64,000 nt of DNA, taken from Phallusia mammillata. Its lineage: Eukaryota. Shown here piece by piece: positions 1-28,400 of the stretch. The stretch's first letter is position 1, and every line of letters starts with the position of its first letter. The DNA lies in the NCBI GenBank assembly GCA_965637545.1, contig OZ281500.1, positions 744,001-808,000 on the forward strand. Reading direction: 5' to 3'. The notes under the pieces are model-generated. The model did not search any database. It had not been told where the DNA came from and was given only the letters and a program-made list of their open reading frames with translations. Both the position numbers and the translations under genes were made by a program.

Positions 1-2
1 AA

Positions 3-113
3 CTAGTGGACACTTATCAACAGAAAATTTGGTTGAAACATTTTGATGAAAACGGGGATCCACGACCGGATGAAAATCAGAGCCAAGAGGACGTTGATCG
101 CTTGTTCGTTTAA
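3..113 (+). CDS. C-terminal end of an unidentified protein (gene continues left of the window)
   Basis: Open frame from the window edge: LVDTYQQKIWLKHFDENGDPRPDENQSQEDVDRLFV, stop TAA at 111-113; protein-like composition followed by AT-rich UTR-like sequence. No family recognised. Confidence 0.5.
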   Translation, partial: LVDTYQQKIWLKHFDENGDPRPDENQSQEDVDRLFV

Positions 114-1065
114 AATTTGCTTGAATTTGTATTGCACACACATGCACAGTAACAACGAAATGACAGCAACATAACATGGTGAAGTTTTAAATTATCGGCA
201 ACAATCAGGGCATAACAATGTGAACAGATATTTCATGTGCAGCTAAATCAGCACAGATCAGTTTTAGGTAATAATGTGCATAAAGTTTGGAGCCTAGCTT
301 TAAAGCCACATTCCCAGGGAAAACACTTGTTGCAAACTAACTAATTCGGTACTACACAGTTCGAACACTGATAAAAATTGGTTTGTTAATTGTGCACCAT
401 AACAGGACAAAAATAATTGTATTCGTTTTTCATTGAGATGCAGTTTCCGAAGGCGACGTATGGACTTGAAAAAGTAGTTTGATCAAAAACTGCCAAAGAG
501 CTTGTGTACATGAAAAACATCTAGTTGTAGACATAAACAACGAATGTTGTGATCATTAGTGCAAGGTGATGCTAAAACATCTGCATGACAATGTATTTCT
601 CATGCACAAACTTTCTGGCAGATTTGTTTTTAATCAATATAATTAGGGTTGAGGTGGTTTAAAACTGTGAACTGTCAGGTTTGAATAAGGAAGGTTTTCC
701 ACCTGGACAAAAACTCGAATTACAAACATACATCATCGTTTAAGAGAGCATTTAGACCGAACATTAACCTACTATTTTCTCTCTTAGGATAAACTGGCTT
801 AGTGACATTAGGACTAGAGTTCACAGCTTGAAAACGAAGATGAATATGTGGTGTCATGACCAAGATGGCTAAAAACGGATAATGCAGCATTTGTAAGCAA
901 TAAAAACAATTGCTCAATCGGCAAGGTAGACAGGAATTTCTTTTCATGCAAAAAAAAAAATCTTTTCTAGATTAAAGTGCAAAGCTATACATGCATACAA
1001 GCCCTGCATTGCATAAGTAAAAAAGACAAAATTGTAAAAAATACAACACAATAGTACACAGGAGT

Positions 1066-3118: not shown

Positions 3119-3773
3119 GGTGTCTAGAAATAAATGCTTTTCGTCTGCAATTTTAATGCATGATCAGTTGATCACCACAACCACCATCACAATTTTCCTA
3201 ACGTTTCTAACTGAAACTACCAACATTTCTTGCTGAAATTTTGCTAAACTAAAAATCACATTAACTTGGGAATTTTGCAAACCATTTGGAAGTTGGATCA
3301 GTGGCTGATCGGATAAGATCGGAAAATTTCGGAACCGCGCATTTGAGAACAAGATGAGCAGCAGCTTAAATTTACGCTTACTCAGAATTGAAAAATTTAA
3401 AACATTTAAGAGCGCAGATAACTTGTGAACCAAGTAAAAACACTTTAAATAATTATCAAAATAAAAATGTACAAAATAAAGTGTTTCTATTGTACAACGT
3501 TGCACGGATTAATTACAGCAATTAATTGTTTTTAGTTTCGTAAAAATACGTTTATCTTACCATTATTTTAATTGCAATTATAATTACTGATCTAACAACA
3601 GCTGTGTCAAAGATAAACAAAACGTAGTGTTCAACACCATACGAACGTTATTAGTTATATGCGTGCTTCTAAAGAGTTCCTTTACCTGAAAAGAAATAAT
3701 TAGTATGATGGGTTTCACCTAATTACTTTCGGTTGTTATTTGTAGCAGACAACACATTTTGTAACCTGCCAAT
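3119..3773. promoter_or_regulatory. Putative bidirectional promoter between HSDL1 and the REDIC1-like gene
   Basis: Only 655 bp separate the divergent start codons at 3118 (-) and 3774 (+). Positional inference only. Confidence 0.5.
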
Positions 3774-6758: not shown

Positions 6759-7407
6759 AACTGCTCGGATATGAAGCGCATGTTTCAGTTTAACTTTCTT
6801 TTTATGTTAGTCACTCTTTATGTATTTTGCTCGTTTAAATTTGAAGCATTGCCAGTGTTTTCATCCGCTAGTATCAACCTTGAACGAATAAGTTGGTCAA
6901 TTACTTCTTTCTTTCGCTGTTTTGCTTTATTCTTACATTTCGTTGCTATTTAATTCAAACAGTATATCGACCATATATAATGAATTTTGTTTTTGTGTGT
7001 AGTTTGACTGGGCCACAATCCCAACCAAACTGTCACTCCTATTCAGTAAATGTGGTAAAATAATACCAAGGTTTTTCTTTCTACAAACCTATGTTTTATT
7101 TCACGAATTCTAACTTAACAACCACGAAACCAAAACGCACCAAATTCCAGCAAAAAGTTTCCACATGCAGTTGATTTGATGAGTTGTTGTAGCTCTACTC
7201 TTGGACAAATAGTTCATAATGGACCATACTGAGTTTATCATTATGAAAGGTTGTTCTCTGGATCATTAAGCAACTGCTACCAAACCCGGGTATGACAAAT
7301 TACATAAAATATTTCCTGTGGAGATAAACATTGGTTAGCTGAAGTTTCCCGAAGCAGAAGACATTTTCCACTTTAATCATTTTCCCGGAGAAATTCGGCG
7401 CTACTAT

Positions 7408-10400
7408 TTACACTGGCGTCTCTGTTGTCACGGCGACGTCGGTATTTTCCTCATTCTTCTGCTTATCAAGAAGCGACGCCATCCAAACTTCATCAGTCTC
7501 ATCCAGAAGAGACTCGTTATCGATGCTGTTGAGTCCGGAATCGTAGCTCATCTTCATTTTGCGATCCTCATCTTTAAGATACTCATCCAGGGAGTCCTCT
7601 TTGTCTCCGGATGTCGGAGCTCCTTCCTTCTCGTCTTCCAGATTCTTCACAATTTGATCAGCTAACATGAGATCCAGTTTCAGCTAAAAAAAGTCACGTG
7701 AAAAATCATATGCCAACAAAACGGAAAGGCAATATCGTGAAACATTGAAAGGTGCTTGTAATATTCCGAGAAAGGAAACAAGTTTAAGCATGTAGAGCGA
7801 ATCCTCAACGTGAAGTATGGTAGTGGTAGAAAAGCAAATAACCTTTACAGCAGGGGTCGGCAACCTTTTTTGTACTGCGGACCGTTTTTGAAACTGAAAT
7901 TTTTTTGTGGAACGGCCTTCAAACAACTACAAATAATTAGCAATGAAATGCTTAAAATATTCTATCAATCCGGGATACATGGGCAAAATGTTTTAAGCAT
8001 TTAACCTACAAAGTACGGCCCGGTAACGAACTTCTCGCGGACCGGCACTGGCCGACAACTGCCTTACAGGTCCCAGTTGTTACCAATTCATTTGCGCCAG
8101 TTTATACTTTTGAGTTGAAATCGAGTCCGAAATTGGGTTCCAAATCCGAAAGTACAAGCCCGAAACCCGAACCGGAAATTTTGTTAAAAGGGCGAAAGTT
8201 CCACGACACAAACATGGCCTATAGTTAGAAAATCAAGCCCGAACCCGACCCGACTTACAAACATAGTCTTCGCCTACCTGTGCCTCCTTGGGCAGTGTGA
8301 TGTGTGAGAGCGTGCTCGAAATAATCCTGTCATTTTTCACCGGCATTCCGGGCAGTGGCAAGTTTTTGTCTTTCAACGAGGGGTTTCCCCTGGATTTCGG
8401 GGTGTTGGCAGTCGATGACGTAGCGGTGCTTGCGTCATACTCTACAGTGGCTGCGTATTTATCTTCCTCTTCTTTAATTGTGCTCGGAAGACGAGATGTG
8501 AAAATCTGAAAGATCCGCTGGTTAAAGGAGAAGATTATTGCCGATTGTGTTTGGACAAGTTCCCTAATTACACTGAGGACCACTGTAAGCAACATTAGAT
8601 GTACACACTGTAGCCACACACCAGTTTATACGCAGTACAGATTTTCATTGTGTCTGGAGATACACACAAGCTCACTGCGGACCACTGTAAGCAACATTAG
8701 ATGTACACGCTGTGGCCACACACCAGTTTATGCTCAGCATAGATTTCATGTGTCTGGAGATACACACAAGCTCCCTGAGTACACCGAGGACCACTGTGAG
8801 TAACATTAGATGTGTACGCTGTTACCACACACCAGTGTAAGTATGTGCTTAGAATGTGAGAGCAATACGCGAGCGTTTAAATACAAAATATTGATCATTA
8901 TGATGTACCTTCGGAAAGAGATTAGTGATTTTACGAAGTCGCTTCATTTTTACTCGTTCCACGTCACTTCCGTCGCTCGACGTTTGATCAGAACTGTTGA
9001 AAGACGATGACGTAGGCATCTCGAAACTGATGCTGTTCCGGAAGCGACGCAAACCGTTTGCCACGTTCAACCCGAAAGCTCCTGATTGCTGATCTTGCTT
9101 GGTAAAGTGTTTGGACGTCGACGAACCGAACCATTTGTGACGTCGGGCATCTTCACGAACCTGCCGGAAATGCATTAGTCAAAAACCTTGAAAAGTGGAA
9201 ATTAAGAATAAACGTCACCTCTGAGTTGCAGAGGCAATGGAAGACAAAGAGGAAAAATCCCTGCAGGGAGTTTGTGATGGCGAAGAGATACTGGAAGACG
9301 AGAGTGTTCTCGCTAAGACACAAGAAGCCGAAAAGCCACGTTGTTCCGAGCAGTGGGAAGAGAAAGATGCTCCCCTTTACTGCGTTCCTGCATGGACAAA
9401 CGATTTCAAGCATTATGATGGAATTAGTTATTGCCGAAACATGACGATTTGAGCCAGCAGCTCCAGCCATTCCTCCGTAACAGGGTGCACAATAACAATC
9501 TCAAGGGTGAGTAGAGGTTTAATTACGTAAAAATGTAATGGTAATAGTTAATTTGTTTATAAGAGTTACAGTGCATGCTATCTATGATTATATTTGCACA
9601 ACATTATGTTTGTGTTGTCTTAAAATCTTCCGTCTAGCCTAAACTGTTTATGTCAGGTCGGTAACAGAGAGAAAAATATTTCAAGTATAAACGGAATCCT
9701 GGAATCTGTTTTGAGGGGCGTATAAAAGTAAAATTTATTAAAGAACAACGCAATCAACTTCCATCTTTAAAAAAAAACGCTATGTGGTGCCAGAGAGCCA
9801 ATAGATGGTTAGAATTAAGCGACAACAAATACCTGGTCTTTGCCAGTTTCATATGATTCGACTTCTCGGGTTGTATGTTGAGAATTACTCGCACCACAGT
9901 TATGAGAATCACTGTGTTGATGATAAGAACGAGTAAGGCTGGAGCAGAGAAGGCCCAGATTGAATTATCAGCTGGTGACAACCAACAACTGCAAATAATA
10001 AATCGATGAAATGTGTCTGTATTAGGACTACACGGACCAAATCATCGTTTTATCACTAATACACACAATCATACAAAAAGGTTTACGCAAGTTTCCTGAC
10101 TTGAAAAGTCAATACTTTTTTATTCTAGAACAGGGTTTGTTAACCGTTTTTACTCCCTGTTTTTTATTTAATGCAAAATCCAGTTCGTTTTAAGTTTTTA
10201 GATATAGGCCTACTAGGAAAAAACGAAGCACTAAATATGGTTGCTCCCATTCAAAGCAAAATTCAAGTGTTCCGAGTTTTATTACAGGTTAATTGGGATT
10301 GATATTTAAATCAATTAGACAGAATTTCCCAATTAAACCATCTTTCATACTATGAGCTTATTTTTAGGGGTGCTCTGTATCTCATGAGCACTTGACAAGT

Positions 10401-13400
10401 GGCGCTAACAGTCTCGAACATCGACAAAACTCAAATAAACAACAACGTTGTCTTACATTCCGTTCGATCCGAGCTTCACGTTGAGGATTCCCATTGAAAT
10501 TGCCATAATAAGCAGCGGCGCTCCCCATCCAGCGAATATGTAATACTTCACCCAACGTCGAGCGGACACGAACACAACGACCACTTGCGAGTAAAGATGA
10601 ATGCCTGTGTGAGAGGGATAGTTGAGTTAAGTTGTGTTCAAGTGTTAGGGATGGAAGGAGACATTGTACGCCGTCGATCATTGCCACGATTTGCAAAACG
10701 ACCGCATATGTCTATTGGCTTGATGATTTTACATTGATACTGAAGTGACATCACTTTGTTTCCCAAGCAGTTGGTTGGCCATTTTGAACCATTTTTCTCT
10801 GTGGTTTATGCCCAGTTGTGGCATCGAACAGAATAGGTGAGACATGACTTTTTACCCTGTTACTCTCAACAAACTGGAGTGCTGTTAGATGGCCACACTA
10901 GCCAATACGGCCTATGTCTTGTCACCAGCTGCACTGATGAGGCCTTAAAGGTCGAAACAGTGTGCACTGTCTGCGGCTGCTATGTGTTGCATGAAAATGT
11001 ACGGAAATATGGCCCTTGACGTTTGTAGGGTAATTTGTTATTTTGATAACCATTGAATATATTTCGAAACTTGATCTTCTAATATAAGTCTATATTATAA
11101 AGGACGGTAATGATTTTGCCCCATGGACAATTGCATGTTATACCGGAATGACAAATAAACTTTGTTGCTTTTAATGCATTATTTCTTGAGAAAAATAGAG
11201 ATCGGGGTTACTGTTTGTTTCAACATGGGTTCGGTTTTAAAGTACACTTGTGTTTACTCAGTACGTCAGGCCCATTGGAAGCGATATACCGAATCAAGCC
11301 GGTTTCACAAGCATTTCCATATGGTACGGCATAAACTAGAAAATCTAGCCTGCGGCGGGATTCGAACCCTCACGAATGTTTTCATACTAACGTATGTTTA
11401 CTAGTATTCATATTTTAAATAAAAAACATCATGTTGGCCACAGTCATAACTAAATTGTTGCAAAATAATCAACCTTAGGGCATCGGTCTACCGCGAAATG
11501 TGCTTTTAAGTGACAAATCTAAACGAAAACTTGTTACCTAGGTTCTCTTTAGTGTTTGGCAAGTGATTTGGCGTTTCGAGCGAACAGATTTAAAACGTTT
11601 AAAAACGCTCATAATCAATTAACCGTTTGAAACCGACTTGCGTGCGAACAAGCCAGAATTTGCCAGACATTTTTGCACGCCAGATCCAAATCAGTTGATT
11701 ACGTAATTACACAGTGGCGAGTTGATGTGAAAATTTCGCACGCGATTCTCCGCCAATCCTTCATGAACTTTCCCATACGTCATCACCCGGCAATCCCGCT
11801 CCCCACCTTCTATAAGCATCCACGCCAACACCGACATGTTGAAGTAATAGAGGAATACTGTGACGATGACGCAGGTGGTTGTGGATGACTCAGCAATTTC
11901 TTCAAAGAGAAACACGAGGTCTGCCAAACCTACCGCCACACCGAGATTAAAGTGAATCTTCATGTTTTCTGTGTGAAATCTACAGGGAAAGTTCGTAGGT
12001 TAACCAATGCAACTGACAAAGTTTGATCTTGGTCGTAAAAATATCTCAATACTGAGAAAAACAAAACGTAATGGTTTCCAAAAAGCAACACAAAATTCAC
12101 GTTTTGTGTGTTTTCCCAACGGAAACAACTAGCTGTGACGGACAATATATAGGTTACTTTTGATTTTTCTACAACACATAATTATTTTAAAGATTTTGTC
12201 GGAATTTTTCAAATTCACCACCCTCTTTTGTAAACACATTTTGCCACGATCAACCCAATAAGAATGTTGATTGATGGAAACACTTGTATGTAAGGTTGCG
12301 TTGACCTTATAGCACGACCTATGATAGAGCCACCAAAACTGTCAGGTGACTTAAACCCTGGTAAGTCTGTTTACACGTCGATGGAATATTCAGCATCTTG
12401 CTGATGTTGTAACGCTCGAAGCCTTATCGCATCAGTAACATGATGTTTGGAATGCCACACACATTACTTACTTGAGTTTGATGAAAGCCGCACACATGAA
12501 GAGAACGCCGATAAACGACAACGCGCAGCCGATCTTTGATATTATGCTGAGCGCTTTCTGGTGGCCGAGCACAGTTGCGTCGTCCATGTTGTAATCGACG
12601 ATCTAATCACAAACATGTTTCAATGAATGCCCTGCTGACATAGAACGCTTTTTCAGCAACTTATTCGACGACCGAGTGCCATGACACAGAGTTCGTAATG
12701 ATGAATAGACATTAGGGCTGTAGATGCGCTGCTATTTATTTGTAGGTTGGGTACTGAGTTTTAGGCTAAAGGGGAATTAGGTTAATAGTCTTTTGTTCTC
12801 GAGTTCGATTCCTAGCTCAAACCTTTACAGTTTACGGGTGGATTGTAAACTTGAATGGCATAAGGGCTGTGGATGCGATGTTTTATTTTATTTGTAAGTC
12901 GGGTATTGAGGTTAAGTTTAAGGATGTCGCAGTCTTTCGCTCACGAGTTTGACTTCTACATTTTTCAATTGTAAACTCCTTCGACAAGCTCCATAAAGAT
13001 CGTATTGTTAGCAGTCGGAATAAATAGTGTTATAGGATGAGTTTACCTGTATAAGCACGGCAAAGCTTGTGAGATGTGAACAGTTGCAGACAGTGTGTGT
13101 TGCATTGGATGAGAGCACGGAACAGCCTCTGGTTGACCAAGAACCTGCGTCACCTCCACTACAAGCGAACAAAACATACACGAGTGGTTAGTTGAAGGTT
13201 TGTCCCGTTTGCTGTGGTCGCTACCAGCAGCGTTGTGGCTCGCGTAGTAAGTGGATGTATTTACTGTGAGCGGGTGTGGCAGCTGAGTCTTACAACAGCG
13301 ATCTGGCTTGTATTTGTCGAACACGGGCTTGACAGATCGCGTAAACAGACTTCTTGGCACGCAAGGAGGATGCCTCTACAGCTCGCAGTGCGAATGTAAA

Positions 13401-16400
13401 ATCGTAACGAGGAACATATTAAGAGGATTAGTCGGGCGGATACGGGCTTGTCCATGTACATTTGTCGCACATGTTTTGCGACAACAGCAGCAGTAGGAGT
13501 TAAGAAATTTACGGAAACCTTTCATGGTGGCGATTACCTCATATGTGACATGGCGCAATCCTATAGGAAGTTTTTGCCAAATATGTTAATGGGATCTGAT
13601 CAGAAAATGCAAGGTAAACATTTACTCTGGAAAGAAAGTGTAAAAATTATGCAAACCTTCCTATGCATAACAAAATCAATTGGGTGTATTTTTCACATTT
13701 GAAGAAGACCAACCTACCGAACATTAGACATAAAGTGAATATTATAGACACTAAAATAAAAGTAGTCGTAGCTTGATCAAATAACTGCTATCGCCATCAA
13801 ATAGCGTGTGTGTAGTGAGTACATTCCATTGAAGGCGTTGCAACAATTAATATTGTAAGCATCGGGTGAAATTAAGCAAACTATTTACAAGCTCTGCGGC
13901 AGTTTGTTTTCATCAAAACAAACATCCAACTTGTGGTAATTTCATAAATTAACACCTGAACCGACCTGGTGTCAGTATCCCAATACACACAGTGAAGCGT
14001 CTCCTCGCTGTGAGTGATCGGACTCGGTTCGGGGGCAGATGTTGTCCCGTTGACGGGTCGGTCCAATCCAGTCACATTACCACGCGCTTCTCTCTCGTGC
14101 CTGAACACAATGATGACGGGATCACGTTGGAAGACAACTTCCGGTGGAGGCGGGATGACGGTGGTGGTGAGAACAGCGCTGTTGATCACATTACGACGAA
14201 CTGTTTCTCCACGCTGCAATCTGGAAAAGTTTGAAAAAAGTTTGGTTGCAAATTTTGTAAATGATGTAAAACTTAGTTCAGAAGCAGTTTGGAATCCATA
14301 AGTGACACATATGCATACAAGCGCCCCTGATCTTTATGGATTATTAAAGGATTTGTATTTCCAGGCGAATAAAATATGTTTTTTCCACCAGCCTTGCGGT
14401 TCACAAGCAATGTCACCGATATACAAGACAAATGTTTTTCAATCTACAACCCAACGTCTCCTCACCTGTCGTCGTTTTTCCGTGTCGGCATGGAACGACC
14501 TAAGTTCTTATACCTCACATTCATCACCACAGATTTGTCGCCTAATGCTCGGCGTGGTAAACTGATCGTGTCACCCAGAAAATCCTCACGCCGAGGTGGG
14601 AAAGTTGTGTCTGAAACCGAAAGGCACAGAAGATGCAATAACATTTCCGTGTTCATCTAACTAGCTTAAAACTTATCATGCTTATCTGGCCAACTGAAGG
14701 CATTAGGTCATTGCAACCTTGTTTTCGTAGTAGTAAGAAATTCAAGTTTAAAATATCAAGTTTGTTTAACACAAGGCCGAAGCAATATTAAGATACAAAG
14801 TAACAAACTACAAACAATCTCACGTGTGTTTGTGACGAATGTTTGGTGTGGTCGCTTGGTGGCGCTGGTGGTGGGGCGGATTTCCTCCCCCTCATCTTCT
14901 TCTTCCTGCTCATCCGGTCCAGGGAAGGTGTAAGTTGATGAGGATGTGGATGAAAATGACTCATCAGAGCTGCTGGAGAATGTTTCCCCATCCCCCGTTG
15001 ATCTTACGAGAGGTGAGTTTTCACCCCGTCCGGTTTTGATCACTTCCATCCAAAATGCTGAGCAAGAGAAACATAGAAATTTGTTATCAGTTGTTTCTGA
15101 AGGTGAATAAACTAAAATAGTTTTGCAAAAATTGTCCAGAAATTTTTGGTTTCTGCCAAACGCAAACACAGCAATAGGCTGGAAATTAGAAAACGCGAGA
15201 AACATGGCCGCTGTATGCAGGTTAACAAAAACAAATGTTACTCACCCACTGATTCCGCCTCCGACTTGATGTAATTGTTTGAAGTTTGGTTTGCATCGAG
15301 CAGATAGTGACTGGCTTCTCTGCACAAGGTTTCGGCGGTCGTCACAACACCAGCGCTTCCAGGAACAACGGGATTCTGCAACAACAAAACTCTTGTCAGC
15401 ATTTGCCACACACGTGTTGAAATACACAAGGGCATGCGACAGGAGGACACCAAGTACATGTGGACACGACAGAATGCCGAAGTCTTACAGCTGTAACCCC
15501 AAACTTTGGCGCGTGAGTTTTTGCTGCAAGCACCGATTGCACAAAGATGTCTGTCCTGTTCGTTGGTGCGTGTCGAACTCGTCATTGGGTTAAAACTAAA
15601 AATAGACGAGGGTCGCTTTAATGCTGCGTCGGTTTCGCTTGATATGACACCGTGTGCTTCAGCAAGTATCAGTAACTTTCCAGCGTTTTTCGCAACGTGT
15701 TAACTTTGATCGCTTTCCAAATGCAACAGCTAAACGACATGACTTTACACTAGCTAAGAGTTATGTCGCAAACTGAAAACCCCTGGAATTTTATACCGAG
15801 TCAAATGCACTTCTGTGGTTTAGGGCATTTTTTTACAAAACCCGAATGAAGCAACAAACAAAATCAAATTGTTTGCGCGTCGTCATAATTCCACTTCTGC
15901 GAACACATGTCATTATTTCACGTGTATAGCTTTGCCAAATATTTCTCCCAAACCAGGCAAACAATTTTATCCGGCCGCTTTTATTTGGAATTGAAGTAAA
16001 GGGTAAAAGTTTACCACTAAACCACAAAAATTTCAGCGATTCCCCGCTTGCACAAGTATATTGTGTTGCTAGATATTCCGGGGGCCAAAACATTGCAAAT
16101 ATGCTTCAAGATTTGCAAGAAGTAAAAAGTAACTGAACACAATGGACAAGCGGGAAGCATTGTTGGACGCAGTGATCGTAAACACCCGAATTGTCACCAT
16201 TACTTGGAGATATAAACATCAGATAATACGAGGCATCTTCTATCCTACAGCGATCAAAAAACTCAAAGCCCGCGGCGCATTGATCCAGCAACGAGCGAGT
16301 TGAACAGGCGTAATGACCAGCGAATACGAAAAGAGGATTTGGTCGCCGGAGTCCGAGCGGAAACACACAGACCGCGACGGCCCAGAGAATCGCGTGCGAA

Positions 16401-19400
16401 GCCATGTTTTGTGCGCGGAACTTCTTCACTGGGGAAGCATCGGCATTCCGCGCACGTTTCACCTGCGACCCCAACCCGAGTTCGTTCATCACGTGATTCG
16501 CCAGTTCACCAGTCGTAAGCGGCTTGGAACGGCCGATTGTCTTTGCTCAATACTTCAGGGGAAACGGGATAAATCACAAATCGAACAAAGTTTATTGCGT
16601 CACAATCGCGTGCCGTATCTCCCGACTCGTAAATTCGAATCAATAGTATTTGACATCGTCGTGACCTGCCAAGCGAATCCGCCTTTGTTGACATCCAAAG
16701 GTCGCTCATGCTGAGGCGGAGCCCCTATACCACGTGCGCCTTTTTACAACTGTGGATTGAAGTGTCAGAAATCGTGGCCAGTTTCACCGTTGTTTAATCG
16801 GCCAACCTGTATCAGCTGCTATTTATAAATATTTGTAACCGAAGCACGTTGTGTCTCCGCCGCTTTGACATTTTTACGGGAACGAAGCTACGCGGCGCCT
16901 CGAAAGCTGAGCTTGTATTTCCCGACGTGGAGAAGCAGACGACTGTGTGTTGTGGACTGATTGCGTGTTAGCTTGGGGATTTAATTGCCCGACATGGTGC
17001 GGTAAGCAGCGGTAGTAACTCGGTAACCTCGGTCGCACGCGATCCTAGGCTTCTGTTGGTTACTTTTCGCCGATTTCTGGAAATCCGCTACCTCAGTTCT
17101 GTTGTCACGCGAGATGCTGCACGCTACAAGTGGCATCGGCACGACACGATCGAGCGCGCTTTAATTACTCGTCCACTACAAGCCCGATGGGTCAGTGGCC
17201 GCTAATGGCCGGCGCCTGCACTCCGCTTCACCACATAAAGCAATGGCGGCCGGAACAGATCAGCGCTAATTATTGATTTAACAGGGAGAAGCGAAACGAC
17301 GATCGGTCACGCGATGTCGAGGATTAAACTCCAGCTTATCAGTTGATTCTGGTTGTAGTCTGCACGCGACACTCAAACCTTGACACGCGAACTTGGTTAG
17401 AAAGCCACGCTACTGTTTTCTCCGACGTTAAACAGCGGAAGAAGTGAAGGGTATTTAGCGCGAAGCTCGGAAGGCCAGCGGTGGCAAATACGACTGAGGC
17501 CAGATCACGAATAATGAGAGTTGTGCAGGTTTAGATACTTTGTGTAGTTGTTTGCCTTCGTGCCCGATTTGGATTTGCCCTGGTTTCAACGGGACCGAGG
17601 TAGGGCAATAAACTCGCCCCTCGCCAAACAACACAACTAGCGAACAGGCGGTTTCACTACGAAGCGGTATTAGCAGGAATGTTAGGAATGTGGGGACAGC
17701 GCGAGTGCATTGCTGGCTGCTGATGGTGTCTGTAGAAATTGGGAAATGTGACAAGAGTAGGGGAACTCAGGAAGCAGGTCTCTCCAATGCAAGGCACAAC
17801 CCGGAAAGCGATCAAATGCATTCGGCGTTATTTGAAACGCATTTACTCAAGTAACAGCCGCAACAACAAACATAGCATTGCGCCCTTGTGGTTGTGCCAG
17901 CGCAATTTAATTACTTTATGCAGCAGCCAAAAAACGCACAGGAGTGTTGAACAATAGTTTAGCAACCGAAAAGAAGTTAATATATCAAGGGCATAAATTG
18001 TTTTCAGAATTGCAAGCACAAAACTACATAAATCGAAAATCAAATCGTTCAAGTGTTTTCACAAAATGAGTTGAATTTATGACGAAGCATTTTAGTTGGC
18101 AACCACTTGTCCATGAACCCACTTGAGTTTAACCAAAGTTCATGTGTGGTTAACTGCACGGTTGTTCGTCGCAAAGTGCCAGGCGCTCGCGTACGAAGCT
18201 ACCTTCCTCGCATCATAACCACCGCCAACCCTTAGGGGGATTGCGAGGCTCAGTTCGTTGCGTTGCTCAGCTGAAAAGGAAAGGTCGCCGGGTAATTGTT
18301 GCCCCGACCTATACAAACTCGCTACTAACCCTGGTATTCAGCAGCAATAGCTCGTTTGTTCTACAGTGTTCCCTCTGGGATGAATGACTTTTAGAGGGTG
18401 ACATCAGGGCTATATTCGGCTTCCCAGCTGACCTATTGGTCTAGTTAAGAAGTGGCGTAAAAGTAGGTTTGCTGCTTGGTGGTCTATTGTCAATAACAAA
18501 GTCTATTTTGCCGCAGCCGGCAGTAGTGCTAGCAGGAAGACATCTGGTGGAGTATAGTTGGTCGCAAAACTTAAGTTAAGTATAAGAAAAAGTTGGTTGA
18601 AAGACAGATGCACTTGTACAATGCAGCAGTTAGACGTTCAACATTCAAAACATTCAGAAGTTTAACATCGAAAACAGGCACGGTTTAATGTTCTGTGGTA
18701 TGCATAGCAGGCGTAGAGAAGGCAGCCAATAAAACAACGCGTTAAGATTTGCTTGTCTGTTCCTTACTGAAACATAGTTGTCGTGATAGTGGAAATAATC
18801 CGCACATTCAGTGTTTAGGGTACGACTATTCAAATTATCACTAATGTCACACATTTGGCTTTAAAAATTGGTGTCGAAAAATTTTATATTTTGGTGTGCT
18901 GGCAACCGACAGGGTGTTTCTGCGGTATCGAAAAAACTGAATTCCTATATAGCATAGTATTGAGAAGGTATTCGATCAAAATTGTTGCAGTGCTACGTGC
19001 CTCCCTGCACGGTGGTCGTATGTGCACAGGACAGATAATATACTTGTTTGATGTGGACAGCAACGCGATGTCCGATCAAACTTGTTCCTGCGATGGCAGC
19101 ACACAAAAGTCGCGTGACCTAGACGAGATTAAATAAACAACCGGCTTTAACAGTCGAAGAATGATTAGGCGTTTTCACTCACATAAGATAGACTCTGATC
19201 AACTTGAAAACTGGAGAAAAGGTTACTGTTGCCGAGAGCTTAATGAGCTCGGTTTGTGGACCACGCAGCGTTTGTGATGATTCGTTGATGTATATTTATG
19301 GTTCAAATATTTTGGGAAACAGGGAGAACAGTATAATGTAAACGCTGCTACCAGTCCTGCGTAGGAATTCAAGTCGAAAGCAAAGTCCAACTTAAACATC

Positions 19401-22400
19401 TAAACGCAAACGGTAAAGACAATCCAAGGCAGAAACACAGAGAAACCAAAATTATATTTTTTAAAGTCCAACCAGTTGTATTAAATAATTCATGAAAACT
19501 AATCAGTGTCAACATTTTCTAAATATTCAAAGCCCGGAATGCTTTAATGTGATTCCGTTTCAATTTCTGTCAAATCATTGCAATCGATTGCCGGAAAACG
19601 ATAAAGGAATTTTGTATTTGATGTTTGCCAACAATTTGAATGTGCCATAAAGTCAAACTAGCCATTGAATTTATATTAAAACCGCCCTTGGTAAGCAAAT
19701 CTCATGGATTGACGTGTTTTAATGCCTATACCCTGTTTGACATTTTTAATCTTCTTTAAATAGATCAAAGAAATGTCAATGAACTATTTCTCAAAAACTT
19801 AAGATATGTACAGACTAGTAAGATTCTTTACACCTCGCACATTTCTGTCTAACATAATATTAACAACTCCTAAGAAACCAAAATCAGATATAATCAACGA
19901 TTCCGCTGATCTTCCGCAAATAATAACACGTTCTTATTCCAGGATGAACAATCAAACGATCTAGGGTGTAATAATGTCGTGCTTTGTGACGTCATTGGTA
20001 CGTCACATAGGGTCATTGTGGTGCGAACCCACCACTATTGTATTGACTTGGATTGCGTTCTTCAGTTTTGCGATTTACTGGCTGCAGAAAAAGTCTTCTC
20101 GGAATCTCGACACCGATGGTAAGATTTCTATTTGCTGGCAACGATCTCTGTGGTCGTTATGGCAACAATAATAAAATCAAAATTGACACCTATCTTACTG
20201 TGACAGGCTGCATTTTCTTATATAGACGCTGATAAAAGTGTTCTCTGGCAGATGTATTACGACAGTGCGATCATTTGTCATTTTTACACAACTCTTCAAA
20301 TAGGCGGATTTTTTTCCATTCCATTTAGGCGCATTATGTATGAGTCTTAATTATAACTAACTTGTGATTTCACGCAGGCGGCAAAAATCACGTGACACAC
20401 TTCCGTGACCTCCCGTCACCCCGGGGAATCCCCCTGCTGGGTAATGTGACCCAGTTGGGTGATAAGCCCCACCTTGTTCTGACCGAGTGGGCGAAGAAGT
20501 ACGGATCTCTGTTCCGCATAAAGATAGGATGCAAAGACGTCCTGGTTGTTACGGGGTTAGACACGATCCGGTAAGAACACTGAATATAAATTGCGATTTC
20601 TACGCGATTCACTTTGTAAGCAACCAAACAAACTCTCTTCACAAACGTTTGTCAAAAAAACCTTTTGTGATCAGATAAATGATAATACCCAGTGGCGGAT
20701 TCAAATTTTTTGTCAGCCGGTTCTATCACAAAAGTCATATTTTCAGCCGGTTTGTTACAAAAAGTCCATTGACCGTAACCAGTAATGCTAACCGGTTTGC
20801 TGATCTCATAAAATTTCGTGAGACGATTCTATAGAACCGGTGCGAACTGACTGAATCCCACCACTGATAATACTAAAGTTGACCCATATAAAAATCCGAA
20901 CACAAAAATCAACGGACTAACCATACACAACTATTATGCATTTGTGTTGAAAGACAGTCAACATTTAAATCGAAGACAGTCCTTCCCCTGTAACGTATAC
21001 TGCCTTGTGTCGTTGATTTCAAGGCATTCCTGGTTTATTTGAAGGAAGGCCAACCAAAAACGGCACGGAGACTTCGCTGGTCGACCACCTTACGAAACGT
21101 CCAAACTTATCTGCGAGGGAAACAGCATGACCTTTGAAAACTACAGGTAACTTGGGAAAATAGTATCCAAGCCCTTGTTCGCAACTTAACCTGATGTAAG
21201 TTGTAGAATGTGGACAAAACTTTAAATAATAGTATTATTTGTAAGAAATAAATAGTCAGTTCGAGTTTGGTTAAGGCCATTGTTTAATTGTTGTAACTAT
21301 ACAATGTAAAGGTCTGCATGTAATCCAATCATAACTGTTCTTCTGATTAAAACTAATGTTTCGACATACAATAAATATTTGCACCGGATTGTACTTTTTG
21401 TAAAAGAAACAAGAAGCACAAGTTTGGTTAAGGACATTGTTTAACCGCTTGCCTCAGAATGAAAAAGGTGCTTTTGTGCAACAAAGATTTTTGGGGAATA
21501 AACAAGCATGGTTGTTGTAACTCTATACGGTGGAAAGGTTTGCATATGATCAAATCATAACTGCTTGTTATAATATGCGGATTTGAGGCAAACTACTCAT
21601 CCCAGACAACTTATATTTAGTGAGAGTTGGACGCGGAGGAAGCGTTGCGCAAAGCAGGCGATTCTACTTTACACGACTGGACGCGATCCCGGGAAGAGAA
21701 GTGTGATGGAGGAATCAGCAAACTGGAACGCAAACAACCTCATTGATGAGATGATCGAAGATGCTGATGAACAGGTCAGTGAGTCGGGGTGCGAACATAT
21801 GAACTTTACATCTATCCAATTGATAAACAAATTCCTTTGCTCTATACAAGTGAACTTGTTTTTTGATTCAAGTTTGTAGAGCTTTTCCGGCAATTTTTGT
21901 TTTTTTATCGTTCACTGTACTACGCGCATTCAGTGTTATTTACCCTGATGAAGACGACCTGTATAGGACGTCGAAATGTCGGAATAAAACTACGATTGCC
22001 AGAAGAGCTCTATACACTTGATATTATGCCTGGCAGCAACAGCTTATATATGGTTGTTTGATTCTTTGAAGTGATTTTCATGTGCAATTCCGATAGTGAA
22101 ACTTGGGCAAAGTTGTTTATGAGGCATATTAGGTTTAAAACACTTCAATTAAAACAACAATTCAACTATTCCCAGGTATAAATTAAAGCTGCATTTGTTT
22201 TGCACTGAAAAGCTCAATCTAGCAGCACAAACTCTTATTCAATGGACTGGATAAACTTCTTACAAATCGACGTGTTTTGACGTGGTTAGTGTGCGGGGTA
22301 ATTGTGTATTTTGTTGTGATACGCTTCTAAAAGATCTTTACGCTGTCGCAACTGTATGGAACGCACAATGTATCGAAATTGACGTTGTAATGAATTTTCA

Positions 22401-25400
22401 CGCTGAATGGAAATGAATTGGGTCGGTTTCAACAAAATCATTCAAAGAGTTAAGCAGCATGGAGTAAAACTGTTATGAAAAAAGATCAGTTAATTCGCGC
22501 TTTTCACAAGCCTATACACACCTTATACGAAATTACACCACAATAATTTAAAGTACTAGATTATATGACGAAAACCATGAACAAAACGTTTCACAATAAT
22601 AACTTTGATTTGTAAATTCGCTTGAACGAAAGGAATAAAAATTCAAGACATTTCTGGTTTTAATCAATACAAATTCAATGGCTGTCCTGTGTGAGATAAT
22701 TCGATGAGACTGTCTGGTATTTGCGGCGCCATTTTGATTACGAATAATGTAATTGGTATCCGTGAAACGGTCGAAAATGGTTGCCCGGCGTACGAAGGCA
22801 AATTAATTTCTAACAGATAAACACATTAGTTAAGTATTGGTCTATGAATCAAACTAACCGACAAAATGTAGCCTTTAAAACCTTCTCACATTACTAGGAA
22901 ATGTATGCTGCACATGAATAGACCTAAAGTTGCTCACAGTGGCCCTCAGTGTCTCAGAGAGCTTATGTGTATGCCTATATAGACACATGAAAAATATATG
23001 CTGTGCATAAACTGGTGTGTGACCATGGCGTGTACATCTAATTTTGCTCACAGTGGCCCTCTGTGTACTATGAAAGCGTGTAGGCCCAGATACATCAACA
23101 AGTAGCTTGACTAATCCTTAATTGCCACAGTTTCACATTTAATCGGGCTTGTGCCTCGTTTGTTTCGCAAAAACTTATCGTTGAAGTAAATAAGAAACCA
23201 ATTACAATTGTTATTTATACATATCAAAAGAGGTATTTTTTATCGGCAAACGGCGACAAGGTTCTCTGGTTAGACTTGATTAAAACAAAACTACCACTTG
23301 CTTTTAGATTTATCCGAAAGTAATATATTAAGCCAACGCTTAAAATCCTGAGACATCTTAACTCACATATTGATTTTCATGTTGGAATGTTTACCAACAG
23401 GATCACGTGATCGACCCGGAACCGCTGGTATTGAGAAATGGACTCAACACAATCAGCCAACTCTGCTTCGGCAGAACGTTCGGAAAAGGCGACCCTATGT
23501 TGTACGAGTTTCTCTCAATCAGTCAAAGCTTCGATGGGGCGATGGGATCGGCCCAGCCCGTCAACTTCTGGCCTTTCATCAAACACATTCCCGTCTTAAA
23601 CCGACCTTACAAGGTAGGCTGGTTTGGTTTTAAGTGATCTATCATATGTTGACGATGGGCAAAAAGTCCACTTTTTACGGTGGTTGGTGAAGAACATTCT
23701 TGCAACTATAAACTCAAATTACCAGAATATTCCTGTCGAAAGTATGGGATTCCTACTAATTGCCCTCTCAGTAAAACATATGCACAATAAGTCTGTTTTG
23801 GTGGTAGTTGTGGTAGAATTTATTGCTAAAAAAACATGACTTAGAACTTCAACTCTTAATAGCGAGTTATGCCATCGAGATCCATTAAGTCGGGGGTTTC
23901 ACAGTTGGTGAACCCAATATTTGTGGTAAACTCCCACCCCCATAAATACAATGTTAACGTGGAAATCCCCCAGGTAATCCCATCCTACGTCTTTGGGTGA
24001 TAACTAGTCGATGAGAAAAATGGGAAAACCGCAGAACTTTGTTACAATTTTGGTTGACGTGTAGACTGTTCTAAGTGCTAGTAGTGCTTCTAATCGTTGT
24101 TGGGCGTATGTTTAGTGCAATTAATTTGGTCCTGATTGCAATGACTGGGCGTGTACACTCAGACGTGCCCAAGATCGTTTGTTTAATTGCAGTTTGGGAA
24201 ATAAATAAACACCCTGTGGTTTTGATGCATTTCGTCATCAAGTACAACGAAAATCTGACATAAAGATATTTGAATCAGTTTTTGCCAAACGCCATTTACC
24301 TTCCTTATGTATTCTGTGTCAGCTAACTCAACATATCTTTACCTGCTTTTATTTTTCAGCACTTGCAGACATACGCGATTGCCTATTGGAAATTCGTGGT
24401 TTCGCTTTTGGACAAACACTTGGATACTTACAACCCAAATCACCTGCGAGATATCATAGACTGCCTCAAGTTTGCAAGCGACACGGCATCGAAAAAAGCC
24501 AAGAATACCAACAACAACGAGAACACTGCTGACTACCTGATGACATCCAACGGTGTGAACGGGAATTCGTGTCAGCACGCCCAGGACAACGGATGTAATG
24601 CAAATATCGATGGATTGACCAATGACCTTGATCAAGGTGACTCTTCAGCGTACAATCTCCAGAAGAGAATATGTTACACAGCTGGTGATGTGTTCGGTGC
24701 TGGGTATGACACTCTGCACACTGCGCTCATATGGACGATATTCTACATGGCTGCCTTCCCAGAAACACAGAAGAAGGTGAGTCAAGCTATCTCAGATCAA
24801 GTATTGCTCCATCTCAGTGATTAGTTTGACCATTAAACTGATCAACCCATCCTAGTACACTGTGTCTTTGAGCAAACGTTGTCACAATAAGTTGGAAAGC
24901 TGAAATCGGACTAGAACTTAGATTAGCTACGAGTGTTTCAAAAAGTGACAAAAGACAACAAAATGTTTGATAGTAAAATGTTTTTTCAAGAAATTTTGCT
25001 ACAGATCTTGTGGAAATTTAGCATCTGGTAAAAAGTAAGTTTAACCCCAATGTGTTTTTGAGTGAAACTTATAGCAACTTGTTTTGTATGGAGTTAAGAG
25101 ATGAGGTTGACGCCGCTGTTGGTCCGGACGAAAACCCAACACTTCGCCTTCATAAATCCCTCACACCCTATACACAAGCGTGGATCTATGAAGTATTGCG
25201 ACATGTCGCCATCGTCCCGCTGCTTATCCCTCACTACACAACGCGAGAAACCGAGCTGGAAAACTGCCAAATACCTCCTGACGTTATCGTGATGCTCAAT
25301 GCCTACCAGGTAAAACTTCACAAGGTTTTGTATGTAAACTAGCTCAAAGGTTTTCAAGTAGTGTGTGTATAATGTATAAACGCAAATATATCGAGAAAAA

Positions 25401-28400
25401 TACATCGTGGCTACAGATGCCACGAGCTTTAGTTGTGAAAAGTTCCCTTTAATTCTGGTTTCCTGAAAACCAATTCCTGAAGTAAACTCGGCTAATCCGT
25501 TTTCTAATACATATGTCAATTGTCGGATCAATTGGTGTCTGGAAAGTAAACGGACGGCCAAGTGTTTTAATGAAACAACTGAAGTATTTACACAAAATAC
25601 ACCGGGACAGATGCCACGAGCTTGAGTTGTGAACAGTTGCCTTTAATTGTGGTTGCCGTGGTGGAAAAAATATCCCTGAATAAAATCTGCTAACCCATTT
25701 TCTAGTATAGCCTATATGTCACTTTTCGCATTAATTGGAGTCTGGAAAATGAAGTGCCACTTGATAAACATGAAGTATTTTTCTCACGTAGACAACACGA
25801 GATCCTGAACTTTGGGAAGAACCAGAAGAATTCCGTCCGGAGCGCTTCCTCCAAGAGTCGGAGGATGGAGAAGAGGGAAGTCGGTTGTCCGGAGAAGCTG
25901 TTTCCAACTTAATCGTGTGGGGGACTGGACCACGCAAGTGTCTGGGGTACGAGTTGTCACGGAATCAGCTCTTCATATTTGTTTGTAACCTGGTTCGACG
26001 CTGCAACATCGCACAATCCAGACCCGGGGTGGAACCAGTTTATCCGTGGCCAGTAACATTCGGACTTACAATAAAACCGACCGAGTTTAAAGTGAAGATC
26101 ACTGAGCGATAGACGGCGGTAAAATGTGCCTATTCACTCTGGAATTACTGCGTCATGCTATACGTAACACAAGTATTGGCGTGCGAAAGTGAAGTCAGCA
26201 GTCTTTCCTTAATTGATGTCCGTATTATAGGTAACACAAACCGGTTGGACCTCCGTTGTTGGGCTCGAAATTTTAACACAATGCACAATGCCTAAAACTT
26301 TGTTGTTGTAACTGACAGAACTTATAAGCGTCGTTGAGTATTTTTTCTTGTGTATTCGCAGAGGTGTTGTCCGTAGTTTTATTCGTTTCCAAATCCCTCA
26401 AAGTCTCCACTTTGCTCGAATTTTGCTTTTCATCCGTGTTCTTCATATCGATAATACCGACAACACATAGAAGGGGCACACTTCCTTCGCCTATACAACC
26501 TTCTCTCAGCCACTTCTGCTGTAAGAGAATTCTAACAGCTAATGAATAGGCTGGTTGACAACTGCGTTTCCGTTTCAACAAATACGTTTCCTCTGTTTGT
26601 ATTGATGACTTGCTTGGAGTTGTGGTAAACTGTGTTTGCATGCCAGCGTAGTTTGTTTCGTCTGCTTGAGAACACAGTGTTGTAGCTGGGATAATATTAT
26701 TAATTTCTCTGTTTTTTGTATCTATGCCTGTTTCGTGCTTGATCGTGTTGCAATTAACAGTGTTTTGTGTCGTTGTTCCTCAGAGAATAAAACTTATGTG
26801 TGTACCTAAACCGAACACAGGGAAATTGTTTCTTTTACGGGCCGATATTTAAGCGCCAATCGCTTACTACCACGTATCCAAATCTTTAGCGCCACCCTTC
26901 GACGGGCAAGTACATGCTGTCTCCATGGTAACGGCAGCTAAACATGTGACTCGCAAGGGCATGGTTGTCATTGGCTGAATAAACTTTGTAAGTGTTTCGC
27001 AGTGGAGTGTTTGGTTTGATGGCATGGAGAAGCCGACGCTGACATGGCGAACCATTAGTCGAACACACAAACCCGAATATACAATAACCGCAGAATAAAC
27101 GCGATCAGCCCCGAAGCCACTGAGGTCAGATAATCATCATCGTGTGGCAAAGAGAAAAAAACGAAATCTGCTGACCGAGTTTTCGTGGAAAGTAAAATCT
27201 GATGATATCAGGTTAAGTTAACTAATCCCACAAATAAAACGTCGCCAGAGCAACAGTCGAACAAGCAGCAGTAATCTACAAACACACGAGGCTGCATTTA
27301 ACGTCGGAAACTTATTAAGTTGCGCTTGGCGATCAACAGTGACAAGGAAGATAAAAAATGTCTTCGTTTGCTTGACAAAGTAGGTAAATCAAAGTCCATT
27401 CATACCCGATATTTTCAGACGTCGATCTAACTTCCTATTCTCTAATGATTCGGTTTTCGCGAGAAACTTTTAACATGCAACGATTGTTAAAATGTTGCTC
27501 CGGTTCGCCATGCTACATGGTATTGACTAATAGATTTGACAGAATTATTTAAATGTTCAGTTTACCTTCTGTACCATTAACCATGCATCAGCGTAGCTCG
27601 GGTCGATAATCAGGCTGCTCACATTGGCAATCACGTCAGTGAACTCTTTCACGCCCTCCAGTGACGTGTTTGCAATGGGATTTAGCTTCATGACGGTCTG
27701 ATACAAAACAAACGAATTTTAGTTGTTTTTCATCCAACCTTACACATATAAGCTATTGCTGCCAGGCATAGTATCAAGGTTAAAGAGCTCTTCTGGCAAA
27801 TGTGATTTTATTCCGACACATGATGTACTGGTCTTGAACTACAAAGCCATGTTGGATGCAAACGTTTTCATTGGTTCTGAAACACTAATGGTATCACTAG
27901 CAAACACATCACTCCGACCTTATACGAGAAATGCCAAATTTGGTATGTTTTCTGGCGGTGTGTTCAAATACAATGCTTTTGCATGGGAAGATGGTATTGG
28001 TTTACGGTTACCATGACATTTACATCACGACACAAAGATTCCTGAAACAAGGTCTAGGTGAAACTTTAATGAGGTACGAGGACGGCTTTGGACTCACCAG
28101 TATCGATTCTCCGGCAATTTCAAGCTCACTCGGAAGAATAGCGGCTATTCCAGCAGTGATTTCACTCCCTGACCCTGGTTCTTCGGCTGGTTGAACCAAC
28201 TCTGCAACATTTCCGAGCGCTGTACTCGCTTCGGCTACGTTAATTTCCGTGAGATTTTTCAGTCGGTTGACCTAAACAAAAATTTTAAGTTGCCATGTTG
28301 ACTGAAAGCAGACACATGTAAGTCCTTAAATTTAAACTAGCACCACATTTCCCAGTAACAACATATTCAAAGCAAGTATGTTAAAATACACTTTTTTGTT

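Follow-up and report, generated by a model that had tools for sequence, protein, structure and literature searches.

The window (the whole stretch of 64,000 nucleotides of Phallusia mammillata DNA that was analysed) contains a CYP1-like cytochrome P450 (CYP) detoxification gene with exons that match CYP1A1, CYP1A2, and CYP1B1. The first three junctions of the gene model are based on RNA and the others are predicted. The gene is expressed, as spliced RNA contigs were found in four runs of three studies, and the GT..AG joint from 20117 to 20377 occurs in four RNA runs of three studies. The encoded protein has the heme-binding cysteine motif WGTGPRKCLG (residue 513), in which W replaces the usual F, as is likewise the case in other ascidian sequences. 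In a maximum-likelihood tree of 23 sequences, a small sampling without CYP1C or CYP1D, the ascidian clade had a support of 100/100, and a group of ascidian sequences and vertebrate CYP1A/CYP1B was split from CYP17 and CYP2 with a support of 100/99. Under the P450 nomenclature rule, a protein is assigned to a family if its identity to one of the named members is 40% or more. The window CYP is 31–34.5% identical to vertebrate CYP1A4, CYP1B1, and CYP1A1-like proteins and 44–54% identical to the 'CYP1A1-like' proteins of Ciona and Clavelina, some of which may bear official CYP1E or CYP1F names. Judged by its sequence, the gene is an ascidian member of the CYP1 clade.

The CYP gene is nested in antisense orientation inside an intron of an adhesion-GPCR gene, for which GPS and PAN exons were found (Table 1). 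The CYP and GPCR exons of the window align with a comparison locus (L001), and the nesting is also annotated in Clavelina (L005). A separate stretch of the same intron is covered by unspliced RNA contigs of one study (P1), with a depth of about one quarter of that of the CYP mRNA in both runs showing it, and no open reading frame with family support was found in this stretch. RNA cover was absent from 19543–19936 and from the two sampled stretches of CYP introns (20134–20330 and 21316–21512). The left end of the unspliced contig falls 28 nt within a GPCR exon; an overlap of this length would be expected of a k=31 assembly graph where a path meets spliced mRNA.

Table 1. Positions of genes, transcripts, and motifs in the window
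Feature	Position	Strand	Remarks
CYP1-clade P450 coding region	19974–26112	+	8 exons, 577 aa
CYP coding exons 1–4	19974–20117, 20377–20569, 21044–21144, 21619–21782	+	
CYP coding exons 5–8	23436–23613, 24360–24776, 25094–25309, 25792–26112	+	
First mapped CYP exon	19943–20117	+	5' UTR 19943–19973, ATG 19974
Consensus 3' splice acceptor	19930–19942	+	Polypyrimidine tract and CAG; abuts first mapped CYP mRNA base
Host adhesion-GPCR intron	15376–27565	-	Encloses cluster and CYP gene; acceptor AG 15377–15376
Unspliced RNA contigs, study P1	15348–19513	+ or -	Span whole cluster
XRE/DRE-type cluster, ten TNGCGTG	16390–17412	both	Motif positions
Cluster sites, plus strand	16390, 16606, 16961	+	TNGCGTG
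Cluster sites, minus strand	17036, 17106, 17120, 17308, 17363, 17384, 17406	-	TNGCGTG
Dense core	16961–17412		8 TNGCGTG in 452 bp; shuffle-tested
E-box palindrome	16490–16495		CACGTG
E-box palindrome	16731–16736		CACGTG
GC-/CpG-rich non-coding island	16001–18000		Around cluster
Second group of XRE-type sites	11638–11745		Three sites (11638, 11676, 11739); GPCR intron
Extended-consensus XRE TGGCGTGCGA	26177–26186	+	65 bp past CYP stop codon

Upstream of the CYP gene lies a cluster of ten TNGCGTG heptamers, the core word of xenobiotic response elements (XREs), to which the dioxin receptor (AHR:ARNT) binds in vertebrates. The original prediction was exact in its count of ten sites, eight of them in the dense core, and in describing them as mostly TCGCGTG (7 of 10; the remainder comprise one TTGCGTG and two TAGCGTG). 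Start-to-start spacings in the dense core include 14 bp (17106/17120) and, for three sites on one strand, 21 and 22 bp (17363/17384/17406). The two CACGTG palindromes predicted at about 16490 and 16731 were also present and were not significantly enriched, as 63 of 1000 shuffles reached their count. The surrounding island has a GC content of 0.49 compared to approximately 0.40 nearby and a CpG observed/expected ratio of 1.14–1.30; it is free of repeats and yielded neither an Rfam match nor an open reading frame with Pfam support, and a source of copies of the XRE word in the form of direct, inverted, or tandem repeats was not found at the cluster. Elsewhere in the window, two sites of the second group fit the extended XRE consensus (TNGCGTGCGA), and a fourth XRE-type site nearby (11821) is located within coding sequence.

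The abundance of the heptamer was compared with dinucleotide-preserving shuffles. In the frame 16390–17412, which was picked after the sites had been seen, ten sites were counted compared to 0.94 ± 0.95 expected, with a maximum of 5 and none of 1000 shuffles reaching 10. The dense core gave 8 compared to 0.44 expected and the neutral frame 16001–18000 gave 10 compared to 1.54 expected (each 0/1000 shuffles), while TCGCGTG alone occurred 7 times in the cluster compared to 0.33 expected. In an unbiased k-mer count, CACGCGA/TCGCGTG ranked first of all 7-mers in 16300–17500 (7 compared to 0.37; Poisson 1.4e-7). No other 452-bp frame of the window contained more than 4 TNGCGTG. The enrichment withstood the caution that local CGCG richness inflates the counts; other GC-/CGCG-rich kilobases of the window (35–37, 41–44, and 47–48 kb) had only 0–2 sites each. 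The motif excess is real and specific to the full XRE heptamer, beyond CpG richness.

The bases around the core displayed the same specificity. T occupied position -2 of GCGTG in 10/10 cluster cores compared to 30/100 elsewhere in the window (Fisher 1.8e-5), and it is the complete AHR half-site (T-N-GC) that is selected, beyond the ARNT half-site (GTG) alone. Over the whole 4.6-kb interval upstream of the CYP gene, TNGCGTG was found 11 times compared to 2.85 expected, and the extended XRE consensus T-N-GCGTG-[AC]-[GC]-A three times (16390, 17036, and 17106) compared to 0.20 expected. This consensus was compared with a single structural oligonucleotide, the one co-crystallised with AHR-ARNT (CATCGCGTGACAAG; PMC11791172). 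One cluster site has 11 consecutive bases, and one Clavelina site 12, in common with this oligonucleotide; the sequences are CATCGCGTGAC at 17308, TCGCGTGACAA at 17106, and ATCGCGTGACAA at the Clavelina site 8297.

The intervals upstream of the syntenic CYP gene in Clavelina lepadiformis and on a third contig were analysed together with that of the window. In the three loci together, TNGCGTG occurred 26 times compared to 9.7 expected and the extended XRE 9 times compared to 0.62 expected (0/500 shuffles in both cases). Singly, the excess of the heptamer was modest in Clavelina and on the third contig, reached by 25/500 and 14/500 shuffles, respectively, and the sites were scattered rather than dense, with N = C in only 5 of 15. 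The extended XRE numbered 4 compared to 0.26 expected in Clavelina and 2 compared to 0.16 on the third contig, and none was found in the remainder of these two loci. Of the conservation to be checked at orthologous tunicate loci, the upstream TNGCGTG excess recurred, but no conserved DNA alignment of the upstream regions was obtained across the species, and positions and orientations of the sites were not kept. The Clavelina locus also holds XRE-type sites in its GPCR introns (618–1005), as well as a 14-bp XRE unit in a naturally different copy number.

The cluster had been placed around the predicted CYP1 transcription start. However, the CYP mRNA contigs, which come from three studies, end on the 5' side at 19942 (X5) and 19943 (X4) without any further bases, directly behind a splice acceptor and 2.5 kb downstream of the last cluster site, so that the cluster is located 2.5–3.5 kb upstream of the mapped 5' end. 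No spliced contig joining the cluster to the CYP exons was found among the RNA contigs. The proposed AHR-to-CYP1 circuit is supported in part, by a specific motif excess, partly of the extended XRE form, next to an expressed ascidian CYP1-clade gene and by the enrichment of this motif class upstream of the syntenic orthologues; a position of the cluster at the transcription start is not supported.

On balance, the cluster is more likely than not an AHR:ARNT-type cis-regulatory module that would act as an enhancer or distal promoter, with the downstream CYP1-clade gene as the likeliest target. The ascidian AHR:ARNT heterodimer would bind the cluster sites and, once bound, would raise transcription of the CYP1-like gene in cells expressing AHR. 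Constitutive control, as with other invertebrate AHRs, or control by an endogenous ligand would be at least as likely as induction of the dioxin or PAH type. The CYP1-like gene is a candidate target, because the cluster is enclosed both by the intron of a different gene and by a separately transcribed unspliced stretch.

That a real module, perhaps bound by AHR, serves another transcript instead, either the host adhesion GPCR as an internal promoter or regulatory region or the unspliced RNA itself, appears unlikely. The cluster does lie within the GPCR intron, the P1 contigs cross it unspliced and stop ahead of the stretch devoid of cover, their left end reaches 28 nt into the GPCR exon, and GPCR introns hold further XRE-type sites both here (11638–11745) and in Clavelina; yet the unspliced RNA could stem from either strand and lacks a family-supported open reading frame, and its depth follows that of the CYP mRNA in both runs. 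In addition, the gene class associated with XRE clusters in vertebrates is CYP1, here the nearest downstream gene in all three species.

Alternatively, the sites might be class C boxes within a generic bHLH-regulated element. The word CACGCG is bound by Hairy/HES-type repressors and Myc/Max-type bHLH proteins, and for seven of the ten cluster sites the reverse complement is CACGCGA; CACGCG/CGCGTG is enriched (7 compared to 1.35 expected), and two canonical E-boxes lie 200–500 bp off. We nevertheless regard this explanation as quite improbable, since every CGCGTG of the cluster is preceded by T, the TTGCGTG and the two TAGCGTG sites lack CACGCG and still retain T at -2, and the XRE flanks [AC][GC]A are enriched. 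The other two species keep the excess although few of their sites have N = C; CACGCG is present in only 13 of 26 sites over the three species and absent from most of those outside the window, and the others keep T-N-GCGTG. Unlike in Hairy/HES class C sites, the conserved feature is the T-N-GC half-site with XRE flanks. That the excess is a neutral by-product of sequence history or composition without a regulatory role is very unlikely: the island is GC- and CpG-rich, the frame 16390–17412 was selected post hoc, and no nucleotide alignment is kept across species, but no shuffle reaches the observed number, not even for the 2-kb neutral frame, no repeats are available to copy the word, kilobases of equal CGCG richness are poor in sites, and the enrichment appears independently at orthologous loci.

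The candidate AHR:ARNT module resembles the dioxin (xenobiotic) response element enhancers of vertebrate CYP1A1/CYP1B1, which are bound by AHR:ARNT. In both, a CYP1-clade gene is preceded by multiple 5'-TNGCGTG-3' sites that face either way and are spaced over a few hundred bp, and several of the sites in the window fit T-N-GCGTG-[AC]-[GC]-A. The module differs from these enhancers in being a predicted element, in its distance of 2.5–3.5 kb from the first mapped exon, in the location of its neighbouring gene within the intron of a host gene, and in having N = C in 7/10 sites. To our knowledge, Oikopleura lacks both AHR and CYP1 genes, and we know of no CYP1-clade gene in flies and worms. The AHRs of fly, worm, and clam bind the mammalian XRE, and Spineless:Tango of Drosophila and AHR-1:AHA-1 of C. 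elegans do so without a dioxin-type ligand (PMC4229089), a mode that we also consider for the window; unlike the situation proposed here, their known roles are developmental and have no tie to CYP1. Dioxin binding is absent in the invertebrate AHRs tested so far (PMC3292500).

The closest precedent comes from Ciona, in which a single AhR, a single ARNT (PMC3292500, Table 1 therein), and five CYP1 genes preceded by XREs (PMC7068557, PMC3292500) are known. The evolutionary inference is not new, as a report of 2007 already described putative XREs in front of CYP1 genes of Ciona (Goldstone et al. 2007, Mol Biol Evol 24:2619, as cited in PMC7068557). The putative XREs of Ciona CYP1E/CYP1F and those of the window share the ascidian group, the CYP1 clade, and the in-silico nature of evidence and inference. 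The present data concern a different species; here, the excess withstood local-shuffle, de novo k-mer, and flank analyses, and it is also present at the syntenic Clavelina and third-contig loci. In Ciona, activation by Ci-AhR and induction by AHR agonists still await evaluation (PMC7068557), and the AHR-CYP1 link in Ciona, proposed in 2007, is still at the stage of a hypothesis.

The question addressed by the locus is whether the regulation of CYP1 genes by AHR, on which xenobiotic defence in vertebrates centres, preceded the vertebrates. The current picture is unchanged, but the existing hypothesis is sharpened and the assumed position of the cluster at the transcription start is corrected. 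With 8 sites within 452 bp, 10 within 1 kb, and neither repeats nor coding sequence, the locus is a compact test object in a group of animals in which electroporated reporters and knock-downs are routine, and the syntenic Clavelina locus lends comparative support. Because two further ascidian sequences show the same enrichment at the corresponding gene, the cluster is a real candidate, and one that can be tested, for an AHR-to-CYP1 link older than the vertebrates. More tentatively, and in our view possible rather than probable, such a link may predate the vertebrates, with turnover having maintained a site cluster, though no sequence that can be aligned, ahead of one orthologous CYP1-clade gene nested in an adhesion-GPCR intron. 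It would have persisted across this species, Ciona's relatives, and Clavelina, and would answer a small-molecule signal that might be endogenous (e.g. tryptophan-derived), dietary, or xenobiotic. If this were true, xenobiotic CYP1 induction in vertebrates would have been inherited, not invented.

Pattern search of the 64-kb window returned 40 copies of TNGCGTG, the XRE/DRE-type heptamer recognized by AHR:ARNT. Ten of these occur at 16390-17412, and eight of the ten are packed into a dense core at 16961-17412. The cluster comprises seven TCGCGTG, two TAGCGTG and one TTGCGTG. The original prediction had given the same totals, with TCGCGTG as the prevailing form, and all of its figures were reproduced; two CACGTG palindromes (E-boxes), which it had placed at about 16490 and 16731, were both located.

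Positions of the TNGCGTG heptamers of the cluster and of the neighboring E-boxes
Feature	Strand	Positions	Method
TNGCGTG	+	16390, 16606, 16961	pattern search
TNGCGTG	-	17036, 17106, 17120, 17308, 17363, 17384, 17406	pattern search
CACGTG palindromes (E-boxes)		16490 and 16731	pattern search

The 2-kb island holding the cluster has a GC content of 0.49, compared to about 0.40 nearby, and a CpG observed/expected ratio of 1.14-1.30. Because of this GC and CpG richness, dinucleotide-preserving shuffles of the stretch itself (n = 1000) served as the null expectation. The ten sites at 16390-17412 compare to 0.94 +/- 0.95 in the shuffles, whose maximum was 5, and none of the 1000 shuffles reached ten, confirming the enrichment originally proposed. 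Within the core, eight sites were observed versus 0.44 in shuffles; a neutral frame (16001-18000) yielded ten sites versus 1.54, with 0/1000 shuffles reaching ten, and TCGCGTG alone occurred seven times with 0.33 expected. Against a first-order Markov model, CACGCGA/TCGCGTG ranked first among all 7-mers of 16300-17500 (Poisson 1.4e-7), the second-ranked word being three orders of magnitude weaker. A T two bases upstream of the GCGTG core was present in 10/10 cases in the cluster versus 30/100 elsewhere in the window (Fisher 1.8e-5), and no other 452-bp frame of the window held more than four TNGCGTG. Local CGCG richness, which had been suspected of inflating the count, does not account for it, as the shuffles gave 0.94 and the window kilobases equally rich in CGCG words (42 and 47 kb) contain no TNGCGTG site. 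The excess is real and specific to the full heptamer. The E-box pair was not significant alone in the shuffle test.

Two further features were observed in the window. A weaker group of five TNGCGTG inside 1 kb (37760-38701) adjoins GC-rich sequence at 35-37 kb. A palindromic TATA-like word, TATTTATAAATATTT, occurs at 16820-16834 (TATAAA at 16824-16829), flanked by the upstream E-box on one side and the eight-site core on the other, and could represent a core promoter in either direction.

AHR-ARNT has been co-crystallised with an oligonucleotide, CATCGCGTGACAAG, described as carrying a T-N-GCGTG XRE (PMC11791172). Sites 17308 (CATCGCGTGAC) and 17106 (TCGCGTGACAA) resemble this oligonucleotide, indicating that the N = C form dominant here is an authentic XRE. 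The sequence TCGCGTGCGA occurs at both 16390 and 17036; together with 17106, these sites match the extended XRE T-N-GCGTG-[AC]-[GC]-A (3 sites versus 0.20 expected), a literature consensus checked against one published oligonucleotide. Another match to this consensus, TGGCGTGCGA, was observed at 26177-26186, 65 bp past the CYP stop codon. A rival reading is that the sites are class C boxes instead of AHR sites: CACGCG, the class C box bound by Hairy/HES and Myc/Max-type proteins, is present in seven of the cluster sites. However, the three sites lacking CACGCG still keep the T and are left unexplained by a class C box, which accounts neither for the flank preferences nor for the sites of other species.

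Other origins of the island were rejected. A repeat or mobile element as source of the motif copies was dismissed because repeats, whether direct, inverted or tandem, were absent and the window contained no further copy, and a structured RNA gene because a search of 14000-21000 against Rfam gave nothing up to E = 1. A hidden coding exon behind the GC-rich island was rejected for the cluster itself, since eight ORFs gave no Pfam match above threshold. Two sub-threshold matches were obtained, one to CCDC174_GRSR (E = 0.012; ORF 16509-16709, within the cluster span) and one to PAN_3 (E = 0.058) in an ORF tail at 16109-16200 on the minus strand; this tail could represent a PAN exon, decayed or alternative, of the host gene, an adhesion GPCR.

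The P450 gene next to the cluster lies on the plus strand with its ATG at 19974. In contigs from four public RNA runs belonging to three studies, splicing was observed at 20117/20377, 20569/21044 and 21144/21619, all GT..AG, indicating that the runs represent RNA and that the gene is expressed. An eight-exon model of 577 aa, built from the RNA junctions with the Ciona protein P0090 as guide, shows 44-54% identity with proteins named 'cytochrome P450 1A1-like' from Ciona intestinalis, Ciona savignyi and Clavelina lepadiformis, and 31-34.5% with CYP1A and CYP1B of vertebrates. In a maximum-likelihood tree of 23 sequences, a small sampling, it forms a clade with four ascidian proteins (support 100/100), and a 100/99 split separates this clade together with vertebrate CYP1A and CYP1B from CYP17 and CYP2. 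Single exons had CYP1A1, CYP1A2 and CYP1B1 as first matches among solved structures. Taken together, the identities, the tree split and the structure matches assign the predicted protein to the CYP1 clade and the gene to an ascidian.

The heme-binding motif begins with W (residue 513, exon 25792-26112), at a position where F is usually conserved. The heme motif WG[AT]G[KP]R[KR]C[LP]G is common to all ascidian CYP1-like proteins examined (the protein of the window, P0002, P0090 and P0003), and a long low-complexity insert precedes the I helix in all of them. CYP intron 2 contains an element of about 170 bp (20697-20868) with RNA contig depths in the thousands and many variants and loose ends in 4/4 runs; this element is a transcribed repeat of high copy number resembling a SINE or MITE.

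Both the CYP gene and the cluster are enclosed by a 12.2-kb intron (15376-27565) of the minus-strand adhesion GPCR, for which the acceptor 15377-15376 and GPS, 7TM and PAN exons were confirmed. Small XRE-type groups also occur in introns of this host gene in two species, at 11638-11745 of the window, where two sites fit the extended consensus (TNGCGTGCGA), and at 618-1005 of L001, a Clavelina lepadiformis assembly, where both haplotypes retain an inverted pair whose members overlap (TTCTCACGCAATGGCGTGAGAA).

The original prediction had placed the cluster around the predicted transcription start of the CYP gene. The spliced CYP contigs begin at 19942 (run X5), 19943 (X4), 19958 (X8) and 19994 (X1), with no letters beyond, and the genome at 19930-19943 reads ttcttattccag/G, a consensus 3' splice acceptor. 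As the contigs stop exactly at the acceptor in two studies, we infer that the exon at 19943 either receives the ascidian leader by trans-splicing or follows a 5' exon that went undetected; an assembly graph in which several upstream sequences join one exon yields such a stop. The true transcription start would lie somewhere upstream of 19943. The first mapped CYP exon begins 2.5 kb beyond the end of the last XRE (17412). None of the contigs of the four runs links the cluster to this exon, and no splice joint into 19943 that would reveal a 5' exon within the cluster was reported, although contigs do not prove absence. Given the gap and the lack of a joining contig, a position around the transcription start is unsupported, though it may still hold.

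Unspliced RNA covers the cluster. In run X1 (study P1), contigs extend over about 15348-19513 at a depth of 9-10 versus 37 for CYP mRNA, roughly a quarter, and run X4 of the same study gave a patchy version of this cover. No RNA cover was present at 19543-19936 or in two tracts of CYP intron, 20134-20330 and 21316-21512. On the left, the cover ends 28 nt within a GPCR exon, which probably reflects the break expected of a k=31 graph where the path merges with the spliced GPCR mRNA; on the right, it ends 27 nt past ATTAAA and 430 bp ahead of the CYP splice acceptor. The contigs carry no strand information, and the RNA could be a plus-strand non-coding RNA that terminates shortly ahead of the CYP acceptor, in an arrangement resembling an operon, a GPCR transcript starting internally on the minus strand, or partially retained intron.

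Related loci were reached by profile-free search with the I-helix exon, and their contigs were compared. In L001 (GCA_961645235.1), sequence aligning with the window at 58-67% identity comprises the CYP exons and the two GPCR exons past the gene. In L005, a second Clavelina assembly, an annotated minus-strand GPCR (1-17384) encloses the CYP gene at 10001-15072, indicating that the nesting is conserved. A third contig (ENA ERZ25067576, built from L003 and L004) displays the same exon order with a minus-strand GPCR exon homologue downstream. Between the window and the Clavelina or metagenome contigs coding exons alone aligned, with no non-coding alignment, and motif recurrence was therefore used as the test in place of alignment. 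Locus L002, which is truncated on the upstream side of the CYP gene, was left out of the upstream test.

Motif counts at CYP1-like loci (observed / expected; fraction of 500 shuffles of the same interval reaching the observed count)
Interval	TNGCGTG	Shuffles	Extended XRE	Shuffles
Window, upstream	11 / 2.85	0/500	3 / 0.20	0/500
Clavelina, upstream	8 / 3.9	25/500	4 / 0.26	0/500
Third contig, upstream (all TNGCGTG in 722-3262)	7 / 3.0	14/500	2 / 0.16	5/500
Three loci combined, upstream	26 / 9.7	0/500	9 / 0.62	0/500
Clavelina, rest of locus	2 / 4.3	468/500	0	
Third contig, rest of locus	8 / 5.4	92/500	0	

Conservation at the orthologous loci took the form of a recurring upstream motif excess and not of alignable non-coding sequence. 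Across species the N is variable (C in 13/26), while the T, GCGTG and the flanks are kept; Clavelina site 8297 (ATCGCGTGACAA) shares 12 identical bases with the AHR-ARNT structural oligonucleotide. Between the two Clavelina haplotypes (~97-98% identical), no site was lost by substitution and two XRE sites were gained, and a 14-bp indel (L001 3033-3053 versus L005 2441-2447) adds or removes one unit of the tandem XRE pair 3033/3047. These differences, which have little statistical power, are consistent with maintenance by turnover. The window pair 17106/17120 has a 14-bp spacing, equal to the Clavelina tandem unit.

The XRE-type cluster upstream of the expressed CYP1-clade gene is non-random, and orthologous loci show the same feature. 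The balance tips slightly towards a functional AHR:ARNT-type module, and we are somewhat less confident that it serves the CYP1-like gene. Ascidian AHR:ARNT would bind the cluster and, once bound, would drive or boost transcription of the CYP1-like gene, starting upstream of 19943. AHRs of invertebrates recognize the XRE (PMC4229089), but the ones that have been tested fail to bind dioxin (PMC3292500); we therefore consider constitutive or endogenous-ligand control no less likely than induction of the PAH or dioxin type. XREs in the upstream sequences of five Ciona CYP1 homologues were reported by Goldstone et al. 2007, as cited in PMC7068557, and according to that article activation by Ci-AhR was yet to be evaluated. 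Our literature search found no later functional test of the Ciona CYP1 XREs and nothing for Phallusia mammillata. XREs upstream of ascidian CYP1 genes have thus already been reported, and this cluster is a further case of a known phenomenon, unusually dense and statistically well supported. New here are the synteny and motif-recurrence evidence and a correction to where the transcription start had been placed.
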